Shown piece after piece: positions 2,470 to 36,038 of a stretch of 64,000 nucleotides of DNA. The stretch is from Salpingoeca rosetta (taxonomy: Eukaryota; Protista; Choanoflagellata): assembly GCA_033442325.1 (NCBI GenBank), contig JAWQFM010000001.1:1246745-1310744 (forward strand), in the 5' to 3' direction. The position numbers were made by a program, and so were the translations under genes. Below the pieces are notes generated by a model. That model did not search any database. It was not told the DNA's origin and saw nothing but the letters and a program-made list of their open reading frames with translations. Position 1 is the first letter of the stretch. The number at the start of each line of letters is the position of its first letter.

Positions 2470-2962
2470 TCCCCTCTGTGCACATGTGTGTGTGTGTGTG
2501 TCAGTGTGTCAGTGTGTGTGTGTGTCAGTGTGTGTGTGTGTGTGTGAGTTAGTCTGTGTCTATGTCCTTGTCTTTGTCTATGTGTGTGTGTGAGTTAGTC
2601 TGTGCCTATGTCCTTGTCTTTGTCTCTCTGTGTGTGTCTGTGTGTCTGTGCCGCGTGGCTTCTTTATTGTGCTTTGTTTGTTGATGTCTTTCCGTATCCC
2701 TTTCTGGCCTTCCGTTTCCTCGTGCTCTTGCTTGCTTGCCTGCTTGCACCGTGTGCACTTTCTCTTCGCATCTCATTGTTCACCTTACTTGCTGACTTGC
2801 GTACTTGTTTGCCTGCTTTTGTTGTGGTTGCTTGTCTTTTGTCGTTTGCTGGGATGGCGTGACTGTGATGATGAATGAATCAAATGAACCACTCCTTGAA
2901 CATTGCGACACCGCTGGTTGTTTGATGGCAACCCCACATGACATCACATCACTCACACGCAC

Positions 2963-3053
<91 letters not shown>

Positions 3054-3266
3054 GATGCGGTGTTGGCAGTGTCTGCCCAAAACCCCACACAAAACCAAAA
3101 AGAAGGCACCAACACTTCGCTACCTGCCTTGACAGTCGTCCCACATCGTCGAAAAATGCCGTCACATGACGCGAGCAGCAAGAAGGAAGAGCAGCAAGAA
3201 GTGGCGTGCCAGCGCCACCGCTGCATTTTCCTTGTTTCCGATGACAGAGCAGCGTGTGCATGCACG

Positions 3267-16172: not shown

Positions 16173-17422
16173 GGTGTCTGTGTCTGTGTCGGTGTCGGTG
16201 TCTGTGTCGGTGGGTGTGTGATTGCTGACCCGTCCACAGGTGCGTTCGGCCGTGCTTGGAGCTGCACAGCCATCTAGTTTTTGCAAAAAGGCAGAAGTGT
16301 CTTAGCTGTCGCTCACCCCGTTCCATCATTCAACATGCACATGCACTCGTGTGCACACCCATCACCACGTCACGTACTGGACAATGTTTTCCAGGATGTG
16401 GAAGACGAAGAAGCAGATGTTGTCTGCTTTGACTTGTCTGCACAAGACTTTGGCTGCCTGCTGCATCATCTCAACTGGAGCCAACTCGAAGCGAGCATGG
16501 TATGTGCTGGGGGAGCATGGGCCTGATGTCAACTTTGTCGCTACCATTTCAGGCAGCACTGAATGGCCTCGTCCACACCTCTTTGCAATGCTCATCACAC
16601 TCACTCATCCAACTCACTCATCCAACACACTCACATCACACTCACTCATCACACTCATCACACACACACTCACTCATCACCGCCATCACGCAGCGCAACT
16701 CTACGCAGCAGCAACGACAATCGCTCACAGCATTCCTCACCCAATTCCAGACCATCCAATCTGGGTATGTAACACGCCTGCATCTGTGCAGCTGCGCGCT
16801 TGCCATCGATGGGTTGGTTCTCCGGCTGTTGATTGCCCAACGCCTTGTTCCCGCCTCCAGTCCTCTTCACACACACACACACACATACACACACTCTCTC
16901 ACACACACTCTCTCTCTCTGATCTGCCGTGTCCACCCAACACATCCCCTCGCTCACTCACACGCACTCACGCCCACACACATACACACACATATATTTAC
17001 GCACACGCCATACACGCAAATGATACACACAACCTCCACATTCCCCTGCCGGCGGCGACAGGGGTAGCGAGCGTGTGGAGCGCGTGGCTCTCTCCTTGCG
17101 GGCGGCAGAAGCTGCCTGCTTTATTGCTGTGTCGAGCCGCCTCGCAAGCATGGGTGATGCTGCATTGGCTCACCCTCCGTTGTGGTGCGCGCGGGTGCAG
17201 AGCGTGCTTGCAGGCATGGAGGACAAGCTGCGCCAGTCCCAAGCAGGGTTTCTGTTCCACACCACACCAGAAACGCGCATGCAATCGTGTCTACAGCGTC
17301 TGCACACCTTCTCTGCGTGGGGGCATCCAACGCTGTCACCATACGTGCTCGCTGATGCCGGCTTTGTGCACGCGCCAACGGATTCACAGCCGCATCGCGT
17401 GCGCCACTACACCGCCATGTGC

Positions 17423-17459
<37 letters not shown>

Positions 17460-18555
17460 GCGCTGCCACCAACGCACCCAACGACACCCACGCCACGTTT
17501 GCGTGTGACTCCCCGGCTTCCATCGCTGCTCTCCTCCAATACATCGAGCACAGCTCAACGCGCAGCGCACTTCCGGATGCGGGCTGGACAAGCATGCACG
17601 CCCGCAACATCCCCCTGCACACGGCCATCAACAACCTGCCTGGGCGCACGTACCCGTCGCACACACGCACGAGCGAGAGCGGGGCTGGCGGATGGTACTC
17701 CTGCGATGACTTTGACACAGACGAGTATGATGATGACGACGACGGGAGAGAAGAAGAGCGTGACAGCGATGAACATGATGATGATGATGATGGTCACGAC
17801 GGCGACACCGCTGTACGTGGCGGAGCTGGAGACAACGCGACCTGGACAGGACACGCGAACGAACCGCACTCCTATCGTCTGCACCACGGCTGTGACCATG
17901 GAAGCAGAGGAAGCAGTCGTGAACGGTCAACGGATGGCATGGATGGTAATGGTGGTGCGTTCGACGTGAATGCTGCTGACATGCAGTCTGGTGATGATGA
18001 CGATGATGACTATGATGATTATGATGATGAGGAAGACGATGAAGATGGTGCTGCTTACGATGCTGGTGATGGTGACGATGCCAGAGAGGGTGAGCCGGGG
18101 AGTTGGGTGTATGACAGTGACGCTGTGAGCGATGGTGAGCGAGCCCGAGCTGATGAGAGTGATGACGCCAGCGCTGACTCGGAGCAAACGTGGCTGCACA
18201 ATCAAGCCGCTGCGGCGCTTGCATTGTCAACGGCGTCGGCAACACCGCCTTCCATCCCGCTTGTTGGCGAGAGCAAAGCGTTACACACGCTTGTCATGGC
18301 GTGTCCTGACTCCGGCACTGTGTCGGTGTGGGGTACGAGCCCTGAACTTGCCCTGCTCACGCATTTCAACACGCGCACGTGCGACGTGGGCTCCCTGCTT
18401 TGCTCGCCTGTACTATTGCAACATTGCAACCGACGCAGCAGTGCTAAGCCCAGCAATGTCTTGGTCGTCAGGCAAGACGGCGGTGTTTCCTCATCACCAC
18501 CGGCCTCCGCCCGAACATCGAACGACAACGACGACAATGATGCTGATGCTGATGC

Positions 18556-18614
<59 letters not shown>

Positions 18615-21600
18615 CGAGCGTGGGCGATGAGGCTGGCATGTGGCCCACTGCGCGCCGTCCCTTGATTGACCATGAGGCTGCAGCGCTGCTGGAAGCAGGC
18701 CTGCTTGAGTTTGGCGAAATTTTGCATGTGGGTGTGATGGGACAGCCGCTGCCTTTCTTGCCGCTCTTCGTGCACGTGCTGTTCTCTGCGGGCTCCGAGG
18801 GCTCGCTGGTTGCCGTGTTCCGCGTCGACTCTGCACTCGCTTCATTCGCCGAGACGCCAGATGGATACTTTGTGTACGTCCTCGCACCCTGTTTACACTT
18901 GCTGGCTCGTGTGCCACACCGAGACGGCTGCACGATACCTACTACACGCAAGTCTCAATCACATACTCACACACACACACGCACGCGCGCACGCACTCAC
19001 TCACTCACTCACACATACACTTACTCACTCACACATACACTCAATCTAACACTTTTTCCACGTAGTTCGCCCGTGGATCACCTGGAACAAGGACTACGCT
19101 TCCCAACGCTGAGTGCAACTGCATCGCACTTGCAGCGCCGACACGCCGAAGTGCTGCAGTTCTCAGACAAGCGCACGCTGGAGCACGCTCAGTGCGTAGG
19201 CGGGTTTGCTGTGCCCCTTGCACAGGTCTTCGCCTGCTGTGAAACTTGCGACGCAGCAGATGGTAACAGCACAGCTACCAGTGAAGATGGTGATGATGCA
19301 TTGCCGCGTTGTGTGATTGCCATTGGCAACCACGATGAACACGGCCCCTGCGCGGCAGTGATTTCGCTACGCGATGCTCTTCTGCGCAACACGACTGCAG
19401 GAGCAAGGTGGTGCAGCGCGCAGTGGCTGGTTATTCCGCTTCCGGCTGAGTTTTCAGACCCTGCAGAGGGTGTGCGCATCACTCCGACACCCACAGGCTG
19501 CATTGCCCTTGATGCGGCCTCAGGTATTGCCGTCCACGTGCACGCACGGAAAGCGGCATGCCACCGACTCAGCGTTGCAGACCCATCGCTCCGCCTCCCT
19601 ATTGGCGCCGTTCACTTCAACGCTCGCACCTCCGAAGTTGGTGTTGTGGACGCCACGCCCCAGCTCACCACGTTCGCTGTGCCCCCATACCTCCTTTCAC
19701 CAACACGCCGGCACCAGTCCGAAGAGCCCCTGACGTCCCTTGCACCGAGCATTGACCAGGTGCCCTCGCTGATTTCGCCGGTTCAGCTGCTCCCGAAGCA
19801 CGCGAGCGCCCCTCACATCATCGCCACCACATCAGCGCCTCTTGCACTGGCGCATACCTGTGCGACCGATGCCGCGAGCAACACCGAGCCTGCTCTCGAT
19901 GCCGGTGTCTCGTCGTCCCTGTGCCTGCACGACCTGCCGCCCGCGTGGCCGCCGCCTCTGCGTGCCGGCATGGTCTGCGTTGGCGGTGATGCTGTGGTTT
20001 CTGCGGGTGCAGGTGTTGAACCGCCACGTCAACCGCCATCACCGCTGTCCCTGCCACCGCAATCATCGCCATCCCCTTCATCTGCCTCTTCTTCGACGCC
20101 TGTGCAGGCTGTGCAGACGTTTGCCGCCCCTGTTGAATTCGTCTTGAATGGCGACAACCCCTTGCGTGTGCGCGCAGCACCATCGCTGGACGCAGAACCG
20201 CTTGGTGTTCTTCGAAAGGGCGGGGTGGTGCACGCCGTCGCACGTGCAAGCGGGGACTGGCTGCAAATCCAATATGCTGCCAAGACCAAAGGCAAGAAAA
20301 AGAAGAGCAGGAAGAAGACCAAGGCCCAGGGCACCGAGGAGCCCGTGGCCCTGGCTTGGGTGAAGCAGTTTGCCATCACACGACAGGGCCTCACCACCAA
20401 GACGCTCAGGCGCACCAATGAGCCACGTGAGTCCTGTCTGCCTGCCTGCCTTGCACATGCGTTCCCTCTCATTGTCACATGTGTTCCCTCTCCTTCTCGC
20501 CTGTGTTCACTCTCATGCTCACCTGCACACACTACACAGAGCAAGACGATGTCCGGTTGTGTGAAGGCGAGGTGATCGCGAGAGTCGGCCACGTTCCAGC
20601 CGGTGATGCCGTGTCCGCAGCGTTCCACGTCAAAGCGCGTGGCCAAGTTACCAGCTGTCGCGTTCACGTCTCTGTGAGGCGATTGCTGGCCTGCTCCGAG
20701 GCACAGGATGTTGCTCGTGTGGAGCAGAGCTCCGTTGTACTTGTGTTTGAACCAGCATCTTCAGCGCCAACACAGCCAAGCGTCCTTTGCATTCCTCTGC
20801 AAAAGTGCCAGCTGCTTGATGTACGTAGCAGCTCTGTCGATCCCAACACTATGTTTCTGTGTGTGCATGCACTTAAAGCATTTTGCGGTGTGCAATCGCA
20901 TCAGGCGTGCGCCCAGTGTCGCCCTCTTGCATTCTTCCCCAGTTGCCCAACACACACACACACACACACATACACAGGCACACGCACACACACACACACT
21001 CTCTCCCTACACACACACACACGCACACACGCACGCACACACATACACACATACAGGCACGCACACACACACACGCACCTACACACTCTCACAACACACA
21101 CACACGTACGCCTTTTTTAACTGCACTGTGCATCGTCCCGTGATCATCCCTGCTGACGCCTTGTGTTTCGGAATGATGCTGGGAATACAGGGTCCCGATG
21201 ACACGTGGATGGCGGACGTCCTGTTTTGCCCGCTCGAACATGGCGTTTCGGCCTGCACCCGGGTGTTGCAGGTGCACGTGTGCGGGCCTGCTGCGACCCA
21301 GGTTCGCGACGTTCGCCTCGGTCTCCTTGCTGCACAACGCCCCCTGCCACAACCGTACGCTGCCGACGTGTCCACGCTGGTTGGCGATGGTATCCTTGGC
21401 ATCACAGGCCTGACCTGTGACGCCCCGGCCCAGCTCTCCCACGCCGCGCGTATAATGAAACACAGCCTTCACCTGTTTGTGTGCGCGCCACGTGTTCTGA
21501 TGCAAGAAAGCGCGCTTCGGCGGCTGCTTCGTGATGGGTTCATCACCAACCCTCACCCCGGCCTCAGCCCCGTGCCAGCGATAGCCCGCTGCGCCGTCCA

Positions 21601-24600
21601 CGCCGCCCCTGCGTCCTCCAAGCAGGCACGCGATGCCATTGCGGCGCAGTTGCTTGCGCTGTTGCCGGACATGCAGCAGCACGCTGCCACTTGCACACGT
21701 CTTCAGGAGGCACTCGATCTTCTCTTTGAGTTTGGCAGCGCCAACCCGCGTGCGCTTGTCTGCGCGGCGATGCGCGCCCTTCTGCGCGTCGCACACGACA
21801 TGCTTGAGAGGCACAGCGCCAACGCCGCCATGTATCATGCGCTCCATGGCATGTGCGGCAAAGCTGCGCCCGTGCTCGAGCCGATGCTCTTCTCCCTGGA
21901 CCGGCTCACCCTGCCCCTGATCACCACAGATGACAAAGAACCTCACTCCCCGTCAACGCCAACCGCACCAACAACAACGACAACGAGCAACAACACTGCC
22001 GACAGTGCTGCTGGCCAGCGTTCACACCAGTACCACCCAACGCCGCATCGCACCAGTAAAAGTGTTGGCTCGGCGTGCCCGCTGCCCCTGCGCGTGTGCT
22101 CAAGCCTGTCCACGCAAGGCGTCACCGCAAGCGCCCCAGAAGGCCTCGACGCCACAGTTTTCCAACGCTACAGGGTGGATTTCCCCGGCGCACATCGGCA
22201 AGCATCGGCGGTGGTTGAGGTTCCACACGCTGTCGTGACTGGCCTCGTCATATCGCTGGCTGCAAACGACCGCACCCTGCGCATCACATGCACCGGCGGC
22301 CCCACGTTGACCGAGATCACGCTCGTGCACATTGGCACATTCACGCTTGATGAAGTCGACAGCACAACGATCAACGCCGACCTCGCGTTGACGTGCCGCT
22401 TTCTTCAATTCCAGTGCGATACCGTCACCCCTGCAGCCCAAGGCGCTGCCGGCGACGACGTGGGCAGCCCGGACCCGTACCGCACGCCCCCAGACCGTGT
22501 GTCCTATGTGCATGTTGGCAAGGGTTCTGATGGCTCCCTCACCGTCACGCCTGTACGCGCTGCGTCATCCAAGCCGAACATGCACCAGAACCTTACCCAG
22601 GAGCAAGAACGCCAGACACGCAGCCCGTCGCAGCAACAGCGGCAACAACACCAAGGGCTTGATGGCGTCTCAGCTGCTGGCATCGGTGCGGGATTTGGCA
22701 TGCACGCTCCCGGCGCAAACTTGCCCGGGCTACCTTCCCTGTTCCCTGCAAAGGCTGAGGATCCACCGTTTGCGCTGTTTGTGTCCGTATATGGGCACGT
22801 GCTGCTACAACCAGTGCCTTCTTCTGACCCGGTGCCTGACGGTGGCGAAGAAGAGCACAGCAAAAGCAGCAGCAGTAGTAGCACCAGCACCAGCAACAGC
22901 AAGACTCGGCCGCGTTGTCCAGCCGACGGCGGCGCCCCACGGGACGTTCACCTGGCAGAAATAGCCCAGGGTGTTGCTTCAGAACTCGAGGCTCGCGTGC
23001 GGGCTGCACAAGCCGCGCTGCAGCGGAGCCAAGCCAGCCTCTCCTCTGTCATGCTTGCTGCTTCACGCGCCCCAACCAGCAACGAACACGTGCAGCTGGA
23101 GGAACACATGCACATGGGCAAGCTGGCATACACAGCGTGTGTTGAGCGGCTAGCGGACGTGTTTTGCCTCTCGTCAACCCTGAAACATTTCCTGCGCAAC
23201 CACCGCAACCTGCTTGCCGCAAGCACCAAGGCAAGGCTGGTGCTGCCCACACCTGCATTTGATCGCAACTCTCGCTTCGCACACGCTGTGCTGGATCGCC
23301 TGCTGCAGCTACTGCCGGCACGAGTGCAGCAGCACGACGAGAGCTCACGACGCCCCACGGTTCCTGGTGAAACACAACGGATCTCACCCGACATGGATGC
23401 CGACACTGCTGAAGGCGGCGCTTTGTGCACGCTTACCGTTGATGAGGCGGTGCAGCTGTATTTTGGGCTGTGCTTGCAGGCATCGTCGGCAGTTGGACAA
23501 GCTGTGGTGGACGTGCTGGTGCGAGCCGTCTCCTTTTCCGTTGCCGAGTGGAACAGGCTGGTCCTTAACATCTTGCAGCAAGCACCAAACCACAGCCTGA
23601 GCCGCCGCATCGTCAACGACGCCGTGTGCTTGATGCAGGCAAGAGGCCTCGCTGACACCTCCGTGCACAACCGCCTTCTCCAGGATCTGCTTGATGACGT
23701 TGAGCGCGCGGGCGTCTCCGCTGCACGCCGATACCTTCCTGGTGCACTGTACGCGTTCACCCAGGCCATGCCGCGGCTGGAGGGGCGACGACGCTCACGA
23801 CCCGACGCTACGCACCCCTTGCCTGACAAGCATGCCACGCCGCACTGCGGCAACCTGCCCTGCGTCGTTGTCACTGAGCAGAACACCCACCGCCGTGCTG
23901 CCCTGTACGCTGCGGCGCATGCAACCGTGACAGATGCGATGGCTGCGCTGCGTAACATTTGGGAGGTGAACGACCAAACCACCGTATCGCTGACGATGGC
24001 TGACGAGCACGACCTCAAAGGCGACGAAACAGTGTCGTTTCTGCTGCAGCGACAGCACCAGCAGGCGCATGCGCAGCACGCAACCCACAGCGATGGTGAT
24101 ACACACGGCCCGCTGATGCTGTTCCTTCGTGCTCGCTGCCATGTGGCCATCCCAGCTGCTGCGACTCACTCACCAGCAGCCAAAGCGGCCGCAGCAGCAG
24201 CGTCAACCATGGTCGCCTCGGGCATGGGACGAGCCACGACCAAGGGCGCCGCATCAACACATGGCCGCGCTGGTCGCATACAGCCCGCCACAACCCTGCG
24301 TGCACGCTATTCTTTTGTGGGTGAGTCAGCCATTCCCCTCTTCAGGGCCGTGCCCGCCGCTTCTTTACGTGGCCCTGCACTCAATGCGCCATCAACCGCA
24401 TCATCATCGTCATCCTCTCCCTCCTCCTCCTCCTCCTCCTCCTCCTCCTCCTCCTCCACGGCGCCAATCGTTGGGCAAGTGGAACCCGGCGACGTGCTGC
24501 GTGTGCTTGTGTGTCAAGGGTCATGGATGCGCGTGGAAGTCAAGCGCGCCACAACGCCAGGGCTGGTTGACGGCTGGCTGCCCATCAGCACGGCAGCGCC

Positions 24601-27600
24601 CATGCTTCGTGTCGTTCACACGCGAGAGCGCATGCAGTGGTTTGTCGTCACGCAAGCCGCTGCACCCGCGCTTGAACTGAGGAATGCTGCGCGCATCACG
24701 GCGCCAGTGCTTGCTCGCATGCTGCCGGGTGATATCCTGCATGTTCGCCGGGTTGTGTCCGGCTGGGCCGAGGTACCCTGGGGAGCACGCACGGCATGGG
24801 CGCCCCTCGCCTTGGAAGCGGTCCAACAACGCAACAAGAACGCTTCCTCTGAGGAGGCAGCCACACCTGCAGACCTGACTGTCGGGGCGAGCCGCTCCGC
24901 CACCAGCAGCATCGGCAAAAGCGGTGGCAGTGGGAGCACAACGACACGAGGCAGCACGCCGCTGCTCAAGCCCAGGTCAAAAAGCACGGATGCTGCCGGC
25001 TCACTGTGGTCAACGCACCTCGTACTGAAGGTGTGTCTGACGCGGGAAAGCGGTGCAGCCCGCCATCGCGTGCCCTCTAAAGCTTCCGCCAACACACCAT
25101 CGGCCACCGGCCCATCAGCAGTGAACCCGCAGGACAGAGACACGGCCAGAGACAGGACAGAAGCGCCACCCTCCGCGTTTGAGCACCCACCTCGCCCTCA
25201 CGAAGAGCTGCACGAGACGTGCGTGTCAGCGTTGATGACTGTTGCCGCGTTCTTGTTGAGGCTGTGCGCTGCGCATGGGCTGGACGTGGCGAATATGGAG
25301 GTTGTAAACGAGGGCGGGCGCGTGCTGCCCGGGTGGCTGACGTTTGGCATGCTGCGTCTCGCAACAGGGGATGTGCTACACGTGCGTCCCCGCCCGGCCA
25401 TCCGCCAACAGGAAGCGATCGTGGATCCGTTTGTTGCCGTCATCCTTGCAGTTGATGCTCCAGTGCACAGCGGTACAGACGCGAGTGCCACCGGGCAACC
25501 CCGCAACGGCGCTGCTGGCCCGCTCTCTTCCAGTGAGGAGCATGGCATGTACGTGGTGCGCCTGCTTCGCACCGCGTGTGTATACTCCGCGTGCGACTTG
25601 CTGCAGTTTGCACACGGTGATGCATTGCCTGCCGCCGTCCTGACTTGGCGTGGGCGCGTGCTCAACGCACACGACACGCCGGCCTCCCTCGACATGTGTG
25701 ATCTTGCTCTCGTGCACGTAACGCGGACCGCCCCCTCTGACAGGAACGTCATTCATGGTTACGACAACCTGAAAATCAGCAACAAAACAGCAACAGCAGC
25801 AGCAACAACAACAACAACAACAACAACAATACCGGGTCATGTGTACGGTCGCCATGAATTCCGTCGCACACGAGCCCCAATCGCTGACGAAGAAGCCGGC
25901 TCTGGCCTGGCCCATGCCGCCGATCGCGTTGGCAGCGTTGGCAGCAGTGACAGCGCCATTGTTGCTCCTGCCACTGTTCCTGACCAAGCCGAAGCTGGTC
26001 CTGTGCGCGTGTTTGCGTTGATGGCATCAAGCGCGCTCTTGCAGCCGCTATCTCGAGACGTGTTGCTGTTGCTGGCGGACCTGCTCCAGCGCATCAGCGG
26101 TGGGTGCTCCTGGCGATCCATCATGTGGGTGCTGACGCATGATGCCATGCCACGGTTCTTGCGCGGCATTGCACAGAGCGAGGACGAGGATCTGCAAGGG
26201 GCAGTGGCCTCGTTGCTGTCGACCCTCTGCCGCGCCGTGCAGCCGCCGCTTGCTGACCCGCGGTGCAGTGACCCTTCGGTGGTGCAACTCCTACACCCGG
26301 TGCCGCTGCACACGCACTACGCGCTTGTGCAGGATGTTGTGTACCAGTACCTCCGGGCCTGTTCCCACTCGCGCCTGGTGTCGACGAGCGCGCTGCCGTT
26401 CCTGTTGAACGTGCTCATGCCTTTGCACGACCGAGGCGCGCCACTGCGCGTGGACTGGCACGAGCACACGCTGCTGCCGTCCAAGCCAACACAGCAGCAC
26501 CGGCCGTGGACGTGCATCTCCTGCCGCAGCGAGCACTCGGGCCTGGCCCGCGGCGTGCCCCGGTTCAGTTGCGCCAAAGGATGCGACTTCCACCTCTGCC
26601 CCAGCTGCATCCCGTACGGCCCGCCCGACCGCCCCGGACCCGTCATCTCCGCCGGTGCCCTGGACACGCTGTTTGCGGCGCTGTCGCAGAGCACCGCGCG
26701 CCTGAATGCGCCAACGGATCACCAGCTGCGCATCATTGCGTTCAGCCTGGCACAGCGCGCGGACCCTCAGGAGGTCGCCCGCAGCCGCGCCTTTTGGCAG
26801 TGCGTGATGAGCTGTTGCCAGTCCCCGGACGAGGCGTTGTCCCTCCACTTGCGGTCGGTGATCCGCACAGCTGTTGTGCGCCTGCTTGGGGTACAGGTGA
26901 TTTGCCTGCAGGCAATGCAGTCGCTGCTGCGGTGCGTTGCCGAAGCTGTCCGGCGCCTGCAAGACCGCGGCTCCATGCTGCTGCTTGACCTCGTTCACTG
27001 CGTGACGCTGCCTGCGTCCACACGCGTCCTGCTCACGGCGCCACCGCTCCTGCGCCTCGTGGTTCGATGCGCCGTGGCCGTGCTTGCCACCCAGTCGCTC
27101 GCCGTGGAGACCACCTCCGACACCTTTGCGAGGTGGAAGGTGGCCCTGCTGCAGAATGTGCACCAAATCCTGCGCAGCGTCATGCAACGCGCCACCACCA
27201 CCTTTGTTCGAGACCTTTGGACCTGTCAGCGGTGGGCACCGCCGCGCGATGCACCCGCTGGCGATGGTGCTGGCGATGACGTGGGTGAACCTCCCATGGA
27301 CATGTTCTCACCCACGTCTTCACCAGTGCCCTTCAGCACCGAATCCCCAGACCGGCATCAGAGCTACAATGGCGCTTCACGTGCCACGTTCCTGGAGAAG
27401 GTGCAGTTCTTGCTCACGTCCCTCGTGTACCTGAGCCCGCCACCGGCCCACGCTGTGCATCGCGCCCTCACCGAACACACGGCCGCGTCGTTTCCACAAC
27501 ACCAATCGCGCGCTTTTGCTGTTGGATCTGCTGCTAGCGCTGCCGGGCAGGTGGGTGCAACCCTATTTGGGATGGGAGCACCAAGTGCGCAAGTGTCGCG

Positions 27601-30600
27601 GCGCGTGTTGAAGTCCCTCACCGCCAACCGACCTGGTGCGCAGCAGCAGCAGCAGCGGTCGCGGCAGCCGCTGGCAGCCTCCATGGCGAACCTGCAGCAA
27701 TTGCTTCGCGGTGGGCGCGGTGATGGCGGCGAAGGCAGTGCCGGTGCGAGTGCTGAGGATGACGACCTCAGTGGCGTGCGTGCATCCTGGGTGAGGCTTG
27801 GCCTTGGTGATGGCCTTGATGAGGATGAGCCAGGCCAATCATGGGCGACAGACAAAGCAGGCACCGCAGACAGCACGAGCCATGGCAGCGCTGACAGCGC
27901 TCGCCGTATCAGTCTTGCAGGTCAGCGCGTGGAAGTGCCGAAACTGCACGCGTACTCGTCACTTGTGGAAGCAGCACACGCTGCCGCTGCTGCAGCGCGT
28001 GACGCAGACCAACATGGCGCAGACGATACGTCTGTTGGCAACAACAGCAGCAACTACTTGGACGTGCTGCTGTTTGACATGATCCTGCAGCTGATTGGCG
28101 AGGATGAGGCTGCGGCAGCAGCCTGTGTTGGAGTGCTATTCCAGGTGGCCAACGCTCGATTGGTGCAAGTGATGGAGTCGCCGCTCATGTCACTTTTGCT
28201 GCTGCTCCTGCACAAGGACCAAGCTGTGCTCAGCTTTGTGCAACAGCACCGCGGCCTTGAATATGTGCTGTCTCTGCTTGAAGCGGTGCCCGTGGATGCG
28301 ACGTGCATGGTATGGCAACCAGGCACAAGCACCATGGCCGTGCGCCTGGCAGACAGCTTGCAAGCCATCTCTCTGCCAGCGTCCGAGGGCTGGAGGAGCG
28401 GTGAAAGCGCACTGAAGCTGCTACTCTGCATGACAGACCCCGCACGCACGTCAACGACAGCGCGCGATGCCGTTGCGCACAGCCCGTTGTTTCCACAGCT
28501 CCTGCGCCGTGTGTTGTCCCTGGTGCCTGTGCTGCCCCAGACAGCCGCGCGAGCGCTGCAGCAACTGTGCATGTGTTCCCAGTATGGCGCAGCTGAGCAA
28601 GCCGCGTCCGCCTTGCTCACCCGCCCACTCACTGCAACCAACGTCAATGCTCTTCGAGTAATCATGCTGCGGCCGCGTTGCGCGGGACCCGACCCAGGTT
28701 CAGGCGTGCAAGGCTCATCAGCGCCGTCAAAGCAATCAACCACAACGCCCATGCCAGCGGCGGCAGCAGCAGCAGCAGCGACAAACGGCAGCACAGCCAC
28801 CGTGACCACCACCACCACCATTACCACCACAACGCGTCAGTGGCTGCAGGAAGTTGTGTACGCCATTGTGCACAGCGACACGCCGCCATCGGCCAGGTCT
28901 CCACCGTCGCCGACTCCTTCGACAGCAGCTGGCGGCGTGGAATCCCAGCTTGAGCTGTGTCGCGTGCTGCGGGCTGGCATCCACCAGCTGCGCAACACCG
29001 CTGAGGACGTGGCTGCCCTTCGCACCCAACTCCCTCCTCTGCTGCTGGACCCATCAGCCCTGGCCAGGAAGCTCTTGTCGTGGTCTCTCGAGGCCCTTTC
29101 CAGCGCTGGACTTGTTGGTAGGGACGATGTTGAGGCCCCTGGGGATGATGCACGCATGCTCGATGATGCTGCTGATGCTGCAATTGCAGCCGTGTGGACC
29201 ATGCTGACCGTTTCTAGCCAGCAGTCCGCCCCGCTTCCTGTCGAGGGCGAAGCACCACCGCCTCCATCACGCCCATGTCACAGAGGCACAGCCTGCGAAC
29301 GGGACTGTGCTGGCTTGGAGACTGTGTCTGATGCCATACAGTCGTCATTGCTGGCAGCAGGCGCGCTGCACCGCGGAAGTGCGCCCGCCTTTGCCATGGG
29401 TGATTTCGCGTCCGTGGTTGATTATGAAAGACATGTGCGCGAATTGCTTGTGCCGGGGATGCGGGTGCGGCTGCTTGGGTCGGCTCGCACCGCCACGTAC
29501 GAGGTGCCCACGGGCACCATCGGCACATTCGTCTCACACAGCACAGGTGTGCTGTTTCCAGCAGCCACCCGCAACAGCGACAGCCACGGCGACGGTGGTG
29601 AGAGCGTGGGGCGCACGGTGGTTGTGCATCGCGCGTCGATGGCTGACCTTGAAATTGTTCATGCACCGCAGCAGCTGACAGTTGGCGATCAGGTGTTCGT
29701 GGAAGTGTCTGCCATGTCGGACGCGCAGCGGCTGGGGTTTGTATGGCGGCCCTGGTACCACTCCCTGCTCGGCAAGCTGGCCACCGTGGTGAGCATTGAC
29801 CCTGGAAACAGCGTGACCGTCACAGCCGGTGGCATTCGCGCGGTTCTGCCTCCCCACTCTGTGACATTGCTGCCGCAGGAACGCACAACAGGGGTATCGG
29901 CGGCGTCGCTTCACCTGGCAGCCCTGCGTGCATACGTTGGTGCGCTTGCTGCCCTCGCTCAGCTTCCAGTGCATGCTGTACCTTCTTCTCTGCCTGGATC
30001 ACCTGTGTCATCCAACAAGGACAGCGCGTTTGCCGCCTCAGTTCCTGTGGCAGAGTGGCTCGTGGTGACTCTGCTGCATCCCTCGGCGACCGAGAGTGCA
30101 GCAAGCGCGTGCAGGCGTGCGCGGGTGCTCGCAGCCCTGTGCACGTGCAGCCGCGCAGTGCTGGACGCGCTGCTTGATGAATCAAGGCCATACATGAGCA
30201 CGCTCTTCCTGGACTTCGCCAGTCTGTGTCGTATGCATCCTCAACCAGAGAATCACGCTGCGCCCACAGCCACTGACAACACTACAGCAGCACCAGCATT
30301 GGCATGGGAAGAAGAGGAGGAGGAGGAGGAGGAGGAGGAGAAGGAGGAGGAGAAAGTAAAGGAAGGGAAAAACGAAGAACGCGAAGCAGAAAACGACGAA
30401 AGGGATGAGGACGCACTAGCAACAACTGTGACAGGACACCGAAGCGCACAACCCAAGGAGGAGGAGCAAGCGGAAAGACGAGGGGGAGGAGAACGGCCCG
30501 CGCGTGCAGTGTTTGCACTTTCGTTCTTCGCAGCTCAGTGCAGTGCAAATGCACGTGTACGAGCATTGCTGCTGTCTCACTTCTCTGGCGATGACTGTGC

Positions 30601-33600
30601 ACGACTGCTGGTGACAGCGCCCACGCCGGTGTCCCGCCTGCCCTGGCCAGATAGGGCGCGTGTTGTGGCCTTGCTGCCACTGCTTGTGAGTGCTCTGTGT
30701 ACGGCATCGCCCAAGTTTGCACGTGAGCTTGCAGGCAGCCGCCACATGCAGCTTCAGAAGTGCACGCCGCTCGTCCTGGATCGCCTGCTGAGCCTGCGCG
30801 CCTCCGTGCGCGTTGTACTGCACATTGCCCCCAACGCTCCGGCTGTGGCGGCGCCGCTTGTGCCGCGAGAGTGGGTTGTGTCGCCACCGGAACACGGCCT
30901 GTGGTCTGGGCTGCAGCTTGCCGTGCCGGCATCGTTATCGCTTCAGCGAGTGGGCGTCATCCTTTTCCCCGCTGCGCAGTCTACCCTGGCAAAGCGGGTG
31001 GGCTGCTGTGGCACACGCCTGCGCATTGGTGGCCTCGAGGTGCAAGTGGGCGACCGCGTTGTGGTGCGGCGTGCCATGTCGGATCGCGCACAAGTTGGCC
31101 GCGTGGTTCGCCTGGAAAAGACGTTTGTCTGGATCCAAACAGCAAGCGGGCTTTCAACCGTGTTCGTTTCTGATGTGGCAGTGGGAGCAGTGTCCATCCG
31201 TAGCGCAAGCTCGACGGACAGCGATGTGTGTCACAGCGACGGCGGCCGCAGTGGCAACGACAACGGTGGTGGTGCTCATGGCCATGACGGCAATGGCACG
31301 GCTGCCGGTTCTGCTGGCAAGACGACGAAGGCGAAGCAGGCACCGGAAGCGAAACCAGTCGGCAGTCCCTCACTGGCGCATCTGCCACTGGGAGACTTGG
31401 CGCAGATGTCCCCAGCTGATGGGGCGCTGGTGCTGTGGTGCACGCTTGACGTGGATGCCAACACTGGGCGCCCGGTGCTCACACCACGGCTGCCCTCGAC
31501 ACCGCCCAGCAGCACAAGCACATGTGTTGAAGACACACCAGAAACCGCAGACCGCCAACACCCTCAGCGGCCACTTCCAAGGGGCTTGTTTGACGAGCTT
31601 GCTGCACACGACAAGCTCTACGAGCTCGTGCAAGCGGCTGCGTCCACGTTTCCCCCAGATGCACGCCTGTTTGAGGAGGCCACAGGTGCTGATGAGACCG
31701 TGGGTCTGACAAGTGCCCGTCAGGACACGCAGGCGTTTGTGCGTCATGTGCGCGTGCTGGCTGACATTCCGGGCTTTCTTGCCGCCGCGCTTGAGCACCG
31801 TGTGTTCCGAGCGCTGCTGGTTCGCCTTGTTGGAGCCGGTGTGTCGTCTGCGGATGCTGAATACTTGCAGTCGGGGATGCACATGCCAGACCACGTGCTG
31901 CGTGACAGCGCCGTGCGTGCGACAGATGCAAGCGCGCTGCTTGACGGTGTGCTGTACAACCTGCTCATGACCAGCAGCCGTGGCGCCGCCGCGCGTCCTG
32001 TTCAAGAGCACACGGAAGCGATGATGCGCACGCTCCTGAGCAGCGGAATTGTGTACCACTACTGCGTGAGCGCAGTCTCTGCTGCCGCCGGCGGGGCAGA
32101 GATGGAGGAGGACGCCGATTCCACACATTCGCAGACGTTTGATGTGACACACCCTGCTGTCAAGAGAACCAACGCTGTGCAGGGGGAGGGCGCTGAGTTT
32201 GCGTTTTTCCTCGGCGTCACCTCACGTTCCACAGAGGAGGGCACTGCCAACGTTGCTGGGGCGCCGCCCTCGCTGCACCCGCAGCACTCATCGTCAGCGA
32301 CAGCAACGACGACAGTCATCGGTTTCCCGACACCTGGCGGCACAATCGCAGCCGGTAGTGGTGATGGTGGTGGTGGTGGTATCGGACGAGGAACAGCAGT
32401 GGGACGGGGGAGGGGGATCAGCCCCCGCCGAGGTGGAGCACTCCCACTACAGGACGCCGCGGTGCTTCTTGGGCGCAGCGTCAACGATGCCACTTCTGGT
32501 AGCAGCATGCGCACCCATGCCACCCCGCTGCCGTACTCGCTTCCAGGGTGGACCTCGGTCAGCCCCGGGTCCAGCCCAAGACAAGGGCGGCGCAACACAA
32601 AGGCGCGGCGAAAGCCGGACAGGGCGCCCCCGGCGCAGCGGCTGTTCCATGAGCTGGTGGACCAGCGAGCACGCCTGCTTTCGGAAGCGAACTTGACGGT
32701 GGTTGGTGCGGTGACGACCGCCAAGCCGCTGCCGGCATCTGCGCTGCGTGACTTCTACTTTGAGGTGACGCTGGCTGAGGCGCGCGAAGCATTTGCCGCG
32801 ATTGGCGTGAGCGCGTTGCCCACGCTGACAAGCATGGTTGGCTTTCAAGCCGGCACTTTTGGGTTTCACGCCTTTGACGGCTCGCTGCGGGCTGGACAGC
32901 TGCACTACATCGCTCCCGGCCCGGACTCGTGTCCGCCGGGCACGGTCATGGGCTGCGGCTTCAAGGCAGATGAGCGGCTTGTGTACTTCACCCGCAACGG
33001 CTGCATTGTTGGCGGCTACTCCGACCCCAGCGTGGCCCGGGCACGCTACCCGGCTGTCACAGGCCAGCTGGCGACGCTGGTCCTGCTCAACTTTGGGCAT
33101 GCTCCATTTGTGTTCTCCAACCTGAACCGGCAGCTCATTTCACGGGAGTACCTGGCGGAACGCGGCCTGCTGCACACGGTGGCGTCATCACGGCCACATT
33201 CGGAGCCAGACCTGTCGCTGTTTGAAGGCGGCAGCGGCAGCAGCGACCCCGGCGCGCTCTCGGGCATGCTGCCTGCTGCCGGCTTGGGCATGGGCATGGG
33301 CGCGCACGGGCAGATGCCCAGCTGGCGTGTGGACTTTGCTGCTGCGGAGCACGCAAAGTCGATTGAGTCCCTGGTGTCGCACATCCGCATTCTCACGGCG
33401 TGTGCGAAGCAGGCACGCGTCAGCAACAACCGTAGGGTGCAGCGGGCGTTTGTGATGGTGGTTGAGGAGAGTGGACTATTGCAGGTTGTGCAGGAGTGGC
33501 TGCACAACGACAGCATCAACGACCTGTTCCGCTACCTCAACGTGAACAAGGCGTTTGTGCTGTTTGCACGTGCGCTGTGCGCGTGTGACGACACAAACGT

Positions 33601-33992
33601 GATGGCGCGGTGGCTGGAGTCGCCCCTGTCCATGCTGCGCACGCTTGTGCACGACTACGAGCAAGTTGGAGCGCGTTTTGCCACACGGCCACAGCGCCAA
33701 CTCATGCACCTACTGCGAGTGGCTGCGGAGGAGGTTGAGTCTGCGCTCCGACACGCATCGTCGTCGTCATCGTCGGCACCGGGCAGGACACGTGACAGGC
33801 GCGGCATGCCTGGCTCCGGCTCCGGCTCTGGCTCTGGTGCGGCCTCTGCGTCGTCGCTGTCGTCCTCGTCTGGGGCATCGGCGTCCTCGGGTGTGGTGTC
33901 CCCGGCACCACTCACCTCGGCAACGTCCCTGCTCAGGTCGCCCTTCACAAGGCCGCGAGATCACGACGGTGGTAACGACGACGACGACGACC

Positions 33993-34063
<71 letters not shown>

Positions 34064-36038
34064 GATGATGATGATGGTGGTGGTGCTACCGAGCAACGGC
34101 AGGATCGGCGTGTGCATGGGGAGGGCTCCACAGGCCAGCAGCAGGAGGAGTCTCATGTCGAAGTTGACGCCTTTCGGAGAGTCGAGGCACCGGCAGCTCC
34201 AGAACGCGTGCGGATGACTCCTGAGGTCGCGCCACCTACAAGTGAGCGCGATGATGGGCACGGGCCTGCGGCACGCGACGAGCAAACAACAACAGAGTAC
34301 AAGGGCACGGATGCAGCCGGGAACGAACGTGGCGACAGACAAGTTGCAACACCTGCAACAACTGTGCCAACGACCACAAGACCTGCTGTTTCCACCACAA
34401 CGTCAGAACCAATGGCAACGAGCGATGTGCCGGCAACTGTGGTTGCCGATGCTGTCGAGTATCGCCAACGTCTTGGACGGCAGCGCCTGCGCATTGAGTC
34501 CAAGTTTCCCTCGACGTTCTCGCTATCATCTGGCGAGCAGCGGTCGGTGACGTCGCCTGCACTTCCGCGCCTTGGCCGCGAGCTGACAGACGCCAAGCGC
34601 ACGCTGCCCTGTGACGCAACCAACGCCATCTTCGTGTGCTGTGACGAGAGCAACTTCCACCGCATGCAAGTGCTGATCACCGGCGCCCGTGGCACCCCAT
34701 ACGCCAACGGCTGCTTCCTCTTCGACGTCCTTTGTCCGCCCAACGTGAGTGACCTCTTTGTGCTGCTGTGTTGTGTGTCTGTGCATGTGAGTGCGTGTGT
34801 GTCTGTGTCAGTGTGTGTGTGTGTGTGTGTGTGTTTGCCCGTGCTATTGTTTGTTTGGCTGCTTGGCTGCTTGGCTGCTCGGCTGATTGGTTGTTTTCTG
34901 TTGTCATTTTGTTTTGTTGTGTCTGTTCGTCATCTGTTTCGTTCATGGCGTGGCCATTTATGGACTCATCCACCTCTTCTGTGATGCTCATCACTGCCTG
35001 TATCATGCCTTCCTCGCTGGTGCTATTTAGTACCCACACAAGCCTCCAACTGTGCGCCTGGTAACTACTGGCAACGGCAGCATTCGTTTCAACCCGGTCA
35101 GTAGTACATGCTTGTGTCTGTGCTTGTCTGTGTGTGTATGGTCTGTGTGTGCGTGTCTGTGTCTATGTCTGTGTGTGTCTGTCTGTGTGTGCGTGTCTGT
35201 GTCTATGTCTGTGTGTGGGTATTGGTCTGTGTGCATGCAAGTGCGCGTGTTTGAATTGGTGTGCGCTTGCGTGGAGGCGTTATGCTAGCACGATAACCAT
35301 TTATTTCGCGTCCTCACCATGCCTCTGTGTGTACGTTCCATGGTGCAATTTCTCTGGCAGAACCTGTACAACAACGGCACGGTTTGCCTGTCGCTGCTCG
35401 GCACGTGGCGCGGGGACGGTGGCGGTGAGGAGTGGAACACGAGCAGCACGCTGCTGCAGGTCTTCACGTCGATTCAGTCGCTCATCATGACGGATGACGT
35501 GTATTTCAACGAGCCCGGCTTTGACCACTCACGGCAGGCGCCGGATGTGCAAGCGGTGAACATGGGCTACAACAACATCGTGCGCTACGGCACGGTGCGC
35601 TATGCGATGCGACAAACGCTGGAGTCCCCGCCCGAGTGCTTTGAGGACATTGTGAGGCAGCATTTCTACATCAAGCGCCATGAGATTCGAGCCACTTGCC
35701 AGGCTTGGGTGCAGGACGCGCACGCAGCAGCAGCTGCTGCTGCAGCCGCCTCTTCGTCTTCTTCCTCCTCGTCGTCTTCGGCGACCGATCCTGGACGGCG
35801 AGCACGGACGGTGGTGGCGGCGGCGTATGCTGGGCTCACGATGCAACACAATCCTTACCTGAGCCAGCTGTTTTCGAGGTCGCACGCTGCATATGCCGAG
35901 TACCTGGAGCAGGAGGTTGGGCTGCTGCTTCAGGCGCTTGATGTGCTGGAGCATGAACTTGGCGAAGCGTTTGGTGGCAGCAGTGGGAGAACCGGCCCAG
36001 CCACAGGCCCATCCACATCCAAGAAAGAGCACCAGTAG
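15564..36038 (+). CDS. BIRC6: Giant BIRC6/BRUCE/Apollon-like E2/E3 ubiquitin-conjugating enzyme, ~6,200 aa, multi-domain
   Basis: Exons approx. 15564-16091, 16278(?)-16499, 16694-16764, 17062-20426, 20540-20820, 21191-34744, 35031-35096 and 35361-36038. C-terminal UBC is BIRC6-type ([74 protein letters not shown]) with the catalytic Cys intact. N-terminal similarity to BIRC6 ([21 protein letters not shown]) and a BIR-like segment at about 17270-17423. The exon-2 acceptor is uncertain. Confidence 0.85.

Follow-up and report, generated by a model that had tools for sequence, protein, structure and literature searches.

A divergent CPH domain and a Mind bomb REP-like barrel in tandem within a BIRC6-type ubiquitin enzyme of the choanoflagellate Salpingoeca rosetta

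CPH (CUL7/PARC/HERC2) domains and Mind bomb REP barrels are considered components of the E3 ubiquitin ligases of animals and, to our knowledge, are known only there. What would barrels of both types be doing side by side in an enzyme of a choanoflagellate, and could p53 be their target? The locus that raises this question lies in a stretch of 64,000 nucleotides of the Salpingoeca rosetta genome (assembly GCA_033442325.1, contig JAWQFM010000001.1, forward-strand positions 1,246,745 to 1,310,744), which is referred to here as the window and to which all nucleotide positions refer. Positions 29396-29875 (+) encode a tandem of two adjacent small β-barrels (160 residues, 2897-3056 of the open reading frame, ORF), and the encoded protein is a BIRC6/BRUCE-type E2/E3 of more than 6000 residues. 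A preliminary description of this DNA had interpreted 29402-29875 (+) as a CPH domain followed by a Mind bomb repeat, and had inferred a module that targets p53-family proteins. The translation of this interval, which corresponds to residues 2899-3056 of an uninterrupted 4758-codon ORF at 20708-34984, is an exact match to the peptide quoted there.

The first barrel (29396-29662 (+), ORF residues 2897-2985) is a divergent CPH domain that comprises an N-terminal helix and a five-stranded barrel. Pfam analysis of the isolated segment identified Cul7 (PF11515) as the sole meaningful family, with 22.9-24.5 bits (E 3.5e-5 to 1.1e-4), which falls 0.5-2 bits short of the gathering cut-off of 25 bits, and with a local alignment to profile positions 3-47 of 78. 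Within a scan of the whole ORF the same domain scored 17.6 bits, and Cul7 was also the only Pfam match of the corresponding copy in a second choanoflagellate, Barroeca monosierra (15.9 bits). A six-frame scan of the 55.4-Mb S. rosetta genome with the Cul7 model returned this one site only (24.3 bits, E 0.0017). Full-length homology to bona fide CPH domains was provided by phmmer and hhalign. A phmmer search with the segment against 1.84 billion proteins retrieved an unnamed metagenome protein of ten tandem CPH domains (E 9e-6), while hhalign comparison of a two-choanoflagellate profile with nine true CPH repeats yielded a match of 95% probability (E 3.4e-8, 72 columns). This match runs through the whole domain, from the CPH-specific N-terminal helix to the terminal DLEIV strand (template positions 12-84 of 86), and the profile of true CPH repeats itself retrieves CUL7, CUL9 and HERC2 from the PDB (1e-18 to 1e-23). 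The metagenome protein (JGI, 1189 residues) is composed solely of canonical CPH domains, ten in tandem (Pfam Cul7, 586 bits), an architecture for which we are aware of no described precedent.

Comparison with canonical CPH domains revealed a 4-residue insertion and a loop of approximately 13 extra residues in the choanoflagellate domain, and the Pfam alignment stops at profile position 47 because of these insertions, chiefly the enlarged loop. The loop lies within the barrel (29570-29611 (+)), is 9 residues longer than its counterpart in Barroeca, and was located by the alignments and by a predicted local distance difference test (pLDDT) score of 58-65 at model residues 61-80. The possibility that it represents an unspliced mini-intron was rejected, as it is in frame, only about 40 nucleotides long, partly kept in Barroeca and covered by RNA reads without a joint.

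A single-sequence AlphaFold2 prediction of the segment was unusable (pLDDT 36), and a model of the tandem was instead built from an alignment of the two orthologues and the true CPH repeats, which gave a mean pLDDT of 82.9 with weak values just in the loop. In this model, residues 1-96 adopt the CPH fold, an N-terminal α-helix on a five-stranded SH3-like barrel, and match CPH structures of HERC2 (Z 10.6 and 9.6), CUL7 (Z 9.2, 32% identity) and PARC (Z 7.8). Because CPH sequences were present in the fold alignment, this structural match is supporting rather than independent evidence. The assignment of the first segment as a CPH domain in the preliminary description therefore holds on a near-threshold and genome-unique Cul7 match, the hhalign result and the structural matches to HERC2, CUL7 and PARC, and the CUL7 pattern given there agrees with the actual CUL7 sequence. 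A search of ESM features also placed DUF4314 near this barrel (0.88-0.89), but this is below the recognition threshold and was not used.

The second barrel (29672-29875 (+)) follows a short linker at 29663-29671 (+), whose limits were taken from the secondary structure of the model and the ranges of the structural matches. At the sequence level this barrel is an orphan. The SH3_15 model (PF18346) did not match it in S. rosetta or Barroeca even at E ≤ 10, nor did it match anywhere in the S. rosetta genome scan, and the only Pfam matches were weak ones to MSSS (E 0.0015) and KOW. A two-species profile of the barrel retrieved no relative from the PDB sequences, with neither MIB1 nor HERC2 matched (E ≤ 10), and no paralogue in the S. 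rosetta genome, and exhaustive searching of the 1.84 billion proteins yielded the orthologue and otherwise just repeat artefacts. The tandem profiles used in these comparisons are shallow, as they contain two orthologous sequences only.

The fold of the second barrel points to Mind bomb. This part of the fold alignment contained only the two choanoflagellate sequences and no Mind bomb sequence, and the barrel was modelled at pLDDT 82-92. Its top structural match was REP repeat 2 of Mind bomb 1 (residues 332-400), with a Z score of 11.4, a root-mean-square deviation of 1.3 Å over 66 residues and 26% identity, followed by further MIB1 matches (residues 332-400/407) at Z 11.1-11.3. The MIB1 REP ranked first among the top 1000 Foldseek chains and again when all of 48,161 representative chains were compared, approximately 3 Z units above the next unrelated family (KOW6-KOW7, Z 8.1); the usual background of small barrels is Z 6-8. 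Shape neighbours of the barrel in the ESM Atlas comprise Mind-bomb-type RING E3s, N-terminal regions of CUL7/9 and a phage cluster that is partly labelled SH3_15, and a feature search provided a sole sequence-feature lead, a phage cluster with SH3_15 in 12% of its members (cosine 0.88). On the basis of the model, we consider the second barrel to be REP-like by fold and do not place it in the SH3_15 sequence family; the earlier designation as a Mind bomb REP/SH3_15 repeat thus stands for the fold and is unsupported for the sequence family. The setting also differs from that of Mind bomb 1 (PDB 4TSE and 4XI6), where the REP1-REP2 pair follows a MIB/HERC2-ZZ-MIB/HERC2 arrangement. Both proteins use the barrel as a module of a ubiquitin ligase, whereas the choanoflagellate barrel is a single copy beside a CPH domain, and neither MIB/HERC2 domains nor ankyrin repeats nor RING fingers turned up in Pfam scans of the two species.

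Over the tandem, the S. rosetta and Barroeca proteins share 46-54% identity, against a whole-protein mean of 32%, and only the SPRY (46%) and UBC (62%) regions equal or exceed this level. The tandem is an island of conservation, which points to functional constraint. When the whole two-barrel model was used as a Foldseek query, the best match (approximately 179 columns) was HERC2 residues 2540-2700 (E 5.6e-6, also 1.3e-4; PDB 9L8Y and 9L93). A 2025 crystal structure showed that in this part of HERC2 a short, proline-rich linker connects a CPH domain to a five-stranded barrel termed INBD (PMC12318192). The choanoflagellate model agrees in order and spacing, as its CPH helix and five strands are joined through a very short linker to another barrel of five strands. 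In both cases the module is carried by a giant ubiquitin-transfer enzyme. However, HERC2 is a HECT ligase whereas the host here is a BIRC6-type E2/E3 hybrid, the INBD has no sequence similarity to the second barrel detectable with the profile described above, and the tryptophan with which HERC2 contacts its client has no equivalent in the choanoflagellate CPH domain.

The identity of the host protein was established from a single orthologue cluster recovered by the exhaustive protein search, whose full-length member is a 5071-residue EukProt protein of B. monosierra. The S. rosetta and Barroeca proteins are collinear across 3616 aligned residues. Three of the five matches from this exhaustive search were discarded as artefacts, being translations of degenerate repeats or bacterial Ig-repeat proteins with scores that are sums of 7-8 weak stretches. 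A word-index search with residues 2860-3100 found no homologue and missed even the Barroeca protein, probably because it was swamped by the low-complexity flanks. The N-terminal half of the S. rosetta UBC domain matches BIRC6 and Drosophila Bruce at E 1e-11, and the complete UBC domain, scored on the full-length Barroeca protein, gave 207 bits (E 2e-60) to human BIRC6 versus 131 to UBE2Z and 121 to UBE2O. The downstream S. rosetta exons carry the catalytic cysteine motif of this C-terminal, BIRC6-subtype UBC domain. The proposal that the host is a BIRC6-like E2/E3 is therefore well founded, with the catalytic-cysteine exon located downstream in the same window.

Resemblance to animal BIRC6 (also BRUCE or Apollon; PDB 8ATM and 8E2D, among others) extends to giant size, a C-terminal UBC domain of the same subtype, an N-terminal BIR-like segment and an internal ubiquitin-like domain. 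In contrast, a phmmer search of 4594 residues against the PDB showed no similarity to the BIRC6 scaffold outside the UBC domain, through which alone BIRC6 chains were matched, and the choanoflagellate BIR segment is degenerate. Judged from these sequence comparisons, "BIRC6-like" is a fair label for the catalytic end and the overall design of a protein whose scaffold is highly diverged. Animal BIRC6 is also without CPH-like sequence and no SH3-type barrel has been described in it (PMC10827748), whereas its choanoflagellate counterpart carries, in addition, SH3_3 barrels, a zinc-finger-like stretch, an SPRY domain, the CPH domain and the REP-like barrel.

Transcription of the tandem was assessed with stranded S. 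rosetta RNA-seq data, which cover 27200-32800 continuously, at low depth, in a single orientation and with zero splice joints. This indicates that the 29396-29875 segment belongs to the mature transcript. The surrounding giant central exon (21197-34744 (+)) is defined by the ORF, by collinear BLASTP high-scoring segment pairs with Barroeca that begin at nucleotide 21197, by the RNA-seq data and by the N-terminal half of the UBC domain, which ends at 34744. A GTCAGT donor directly follows this position and the 20708-34984 ORF ends mid-UBC domain. The domain continues in a small exon of 66 nucleotides (35031-35096 (+)), whose AG acceptor and GT donor were read from the sequence and which fits the Barroeca/BIRC6 UBC alignment, and in a last exon (35361-36038 (+), within an ORF at 35319-36038) that completes the UBC domain with its C-terminal half. 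This last exon includes the active-site cysteine (codon 35385-35387) and the stop, in agreement with the BIRC6 UBC alignment.

With the domain identities, the conservation in a second choanoflagellate, transcription and collinearity with an intact E2 domain established, the role of the tandem could be considered. The reading that we favour, with some reservation, is that it docks clients or adaptors and supplies the E2 domain at the C-terminus. A docking role is proposed because of analogy with the HERC2 CPH and INBD, which bind NCOA4, with the REP domain of Mind bomb, which binds the tails of Notch ligands, and with the CPH domains of CUL7 and CUL9, which bind p53. We know of no NCOA4-like client in choanoflagellates. 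In HERC2, CPH and INBD are joined by a flexible linker and jointly clamp the client, with a mutual orientation that shifts on binding (PMC12318192). By extension, the tandem, apparently inserted in the long and largely helical body of the choanoflagellate enzyme, would hold a client or adaptor protein by a short peptide or helix and present it to the active site of the enzyme's own C-terminal UBC (E2) domain, where it would be ubiquitinated.

Several points weigh against a docking function. No binding partner is on record for the tandem, and the missing conserved aromatics of canonical CPH domains could mean that an ancestral ligand-binding function has been lost. The structural match of the first barrel is partly circular, given the true CPH repeats in the model alignment, and the second barrel has no sequence-level relative beyond its Barroeca orthologue, while unrelated small five-stranded barrels (KOW, Tudor and ribosomal L21e) recur widely and reach Z 7-8. 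In addition, inserted domains of animal BIRC6 often serve intramolecular packing or dimerisation instead of binding clients (PMC10827748). This last point leads to an alternative that we regard as unlikely but as the strongest competitor, in which both barrels are structural inserts that pack on the helical scaffold or mediate dimerisation and bind no client. The armadillo repeats of animal BIRC6 carry many flexible insertions, and many of these stabilise intra- or intermolecular contacts (PMC10827748); the flanks on either side of the tandem are immediately helical in the model, and the loss of canonical ligand-contact residues is also in keeping with a purely structural role. However, CPH and REP are ligand-binding modules on flexible tethers in every characterised protein (PMC9507964, PMC12318192), and the high conservation of the tandem suits either role and so does not favour packing.

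The clients proposed in the preliminary description are p53-family proteins. CPH domains of CUL7, CUL9/PARC and HERC2 bind p53 (PMC9507964, PMC6944118, PMC3365014), and among CPH repeats those of CUL7 and CUL9 are nearest in sequence to the S. rosetta domain (32% and 30% identity). The CUL7 and CUL9 domains (PDB 2JNG and 2JUF; PF11515) are 30-32% identical to it in the core that aligns structurally, and they share with it the FAS..Y..VR..L.PGMRVR and ES.GRT..VH...LEI motifs and the helix-plus-barrel fold. The choanoflagellate host is not a cullin. S. rosetta does encode p53-family proteins, as the preliminary description had stated for choanoflagellates. The genome contains two such loci, at approximately 792.1-792.7 kb of one contig and 911.4-913.5 kb of another. 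In both, the DNA-binding domain is immediately followed by a weak match to P53_tetramer (20.6 and 17.4 bits), and a published study lists three S. rosetta p53 homologues, one of which is positive for the tetramerisation motif (PMC6981761).

The binding surface itself tells a different story. The p53 site of CUL7 comprises residues 376-400 with the acidic/aromatic motifs LDDYEE and DEGEF, a peptide of residues 386-400 with a net charge of -7 binds p53 with a dissociation constant of approximately 5 µM (PMC3365014), and replacement of CUL7 residues 389-404 abolishes TP53 binding (PMC9507964). The S. rosetta segment aligned to CUL7 386-400 (29474-29530 (+)) is neutral and is 4 residues longer than in CUL7, the 4-residue insertion falling inside the p53-binding stretch, and its Barroeca counterpart has a net charge of -1. 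Of the CUL7 site, only the tyrosine, the last aromatic residue and a single glutamate are kept, such that six of the seven acidic residues are replaced. All three tryptophans that are conserved in canonical CPH domains are replaced as well; in that part of the fold, W2619 of the HERC2 β4 strand is a key NCOA4 contact (PMC12318192). The acidic GD.G.F/DDYEE surface and the three tryptophans, which provide ligand contacts in CUL7 and HERC2, are thus not conserved; they are a functional signature and do not define the fold. The clients of CPH domains also include proteins unrelated to p53, NCOA4 being one example (PMC12318192). Because the p53-binding surface of CUL7 is not conserved here, the sequence makes a ligand other than p53 more likely. 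The earlier proposal of a module that targets p53-family proteins is consequently not supported by the sequence, and we consider it improbable that the CPH domain binds the oligomerisation domain of choanoflagellate p53-family proteins and that the enzyme is a pre-metazoan p53 ubiquitin ligase, although co-evolution with a divergent p53 tail is conceivable. A broader scenario has equally slim prospects: the CPH-p53 link would predate animals, the CPH-REP tandem would recognise oligomeric p53-family factors, and the modules of CUL7, CUL9, HERC2 and Mind bomb would descend by domain shuffling from such a cassette.

Least probable of all is that the two segments are generic SH3/KOW/Tudor-like barrels with no specific kinship to the CPH or Mind bomb REP families, a view that draws on the sub-threshold Cul7 score, the absence of any SH3_15 score, the weak MSSS and KOW matches of the second barrel and the many unrelated barrels that attain Z 6-8, but which is countered for the first barrel by the genome-unique Cul7 match, the phmmer match to the ten-CPH protein and the 95% hhalign match that includes the CPH-specific helix, and for the second by an MIB1 REP match 3 Z units above all others (1.3 Å, 26% identity) that was obtained without Mind bomb in the alignment.

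The remainder of the protein contains further recognisable elements. Besides a BIR-like segment near the N-terminus in both species, these are SH3_3 barrels, an SPRY domain resembling that of RanBP9/10, a ubiquitin-like domain and a cysteine-rich stretch similar to a zinc finger. Only the N-terminal half of a survivin-type BIR is recognisable, and the match is weak (Barroeca, E 0.013 over profile positions 1-44 of 70; S. rosetta, E approximately 0.13 to survivin). In S. rosetta this half maps to approximately 17297-17401 (+) and contains RLHTFSAW; CX2C...H...C zinc ligands are not evident in the aligned stretch, and the zinc-ligand half is unrecognisable, broken by an asparagine run. Going by its sequence, this pre-metazoan BRUCE-like protein may thus have a BIR that has degenerated into a "pseudo-BIR". 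A BIR-like alignment has been reported in PTSG_00516 (PMC13159474), which is probably the same gene as this locus.

Two SH3_3 barrels are located at approximately 20162-20293 (+) (30.0 bits) and at 24449-24541 (+) (34.4 bits), both above the Pfam cut-off of 27 bits, and the giant protein holds at least five small barrels of differing types. A third small barrel-like segment after the tandem region, at 31034-31200 (+), is kept in Barroeca (residue 3931 onward) and belongs to no Pfam family. The SPRY domain (32753-33019 (+), Pfam SPRY E 1.6e-4) is closest to RanBP9/10 in the PDB (E 3e-7). The body of the protein also holds one or two ubiquitin-like domains at 25223-25700 (+), Barroeca residues approximately 2390-2440 (Rad60-SLD, E 1e-7 in Barroeca); the internal ubiquitin-like domain of animal BIRC6 sits near the UBC domain, whereas that of the choanoflagellates is in the first half. 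The cysteine-rich stretch (26507-26611 (+), WTCISC...) is kept in Barroeca and has weak C1_2 and IBR_1 matches only; its cysteine spacing, examined by Pfam alone, is reminiscent of a ZZ-type zinc finger. Fingers of this type occur together with the CPH domain of HERC2 and with the MIB/HERC2 domains of Mind bomb.

Upstream of the central exon, a coding part of the same gene at 17075-20572 (+) is collinear with Barroeca residues 287-1029 and includes the BIR-like half and the first SH3_3 barrel. The range 17075-20572 denotes a coding extent, not exon limits. The initial approximately 160 codons of the 20708-34984 ORF are rich in TG repeats and show no homology before 21197, and look like a read-through intron. 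A D-rich low-complexity tract with more than 30 D residues lies at 34150-34330 (+), just upstream of the UBC domain, and a similar acidic tract is present within the upstream ORF at 17075-20572. At 30455 (+), an A>G change was seen in part of the RNA reads from two runs (4 of 6 and 10 of 23) and was absent from the contig sets. A strain allele or RNA editing could explain it, and the reads start at few positions.

The domains described here are of known kinds, and what is new is their presence in a choanoflagellate and their placement in a BIRC6-type E2/E3; our literature search found no paper describing a CPH and REP-like module in this enzyme. A previous survey reported that choanoflagellate HERC2 homologues lack a Cul7 domain and that HERC2 gained Cul7/CPH at the origin of Metazoa (PMC3673628), with which our S. 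rosetta genome scan agrees, as no CPH domain was found besides that of the BIRC6-like protein. Finding both barrel types side by side in a choanoflagellate BIRC6-type E2/E3 would push the origin of these docking modules back before animals, and their occurrence there in another class of enzyme suggests a redistribution among ubiquitin ligases through domain shuffling. The conserved 160-residue tandem also offers a tractable handle on what a pre-metazoan BRUCE-like enzyme ubiquitinates, p53-family proteins included.

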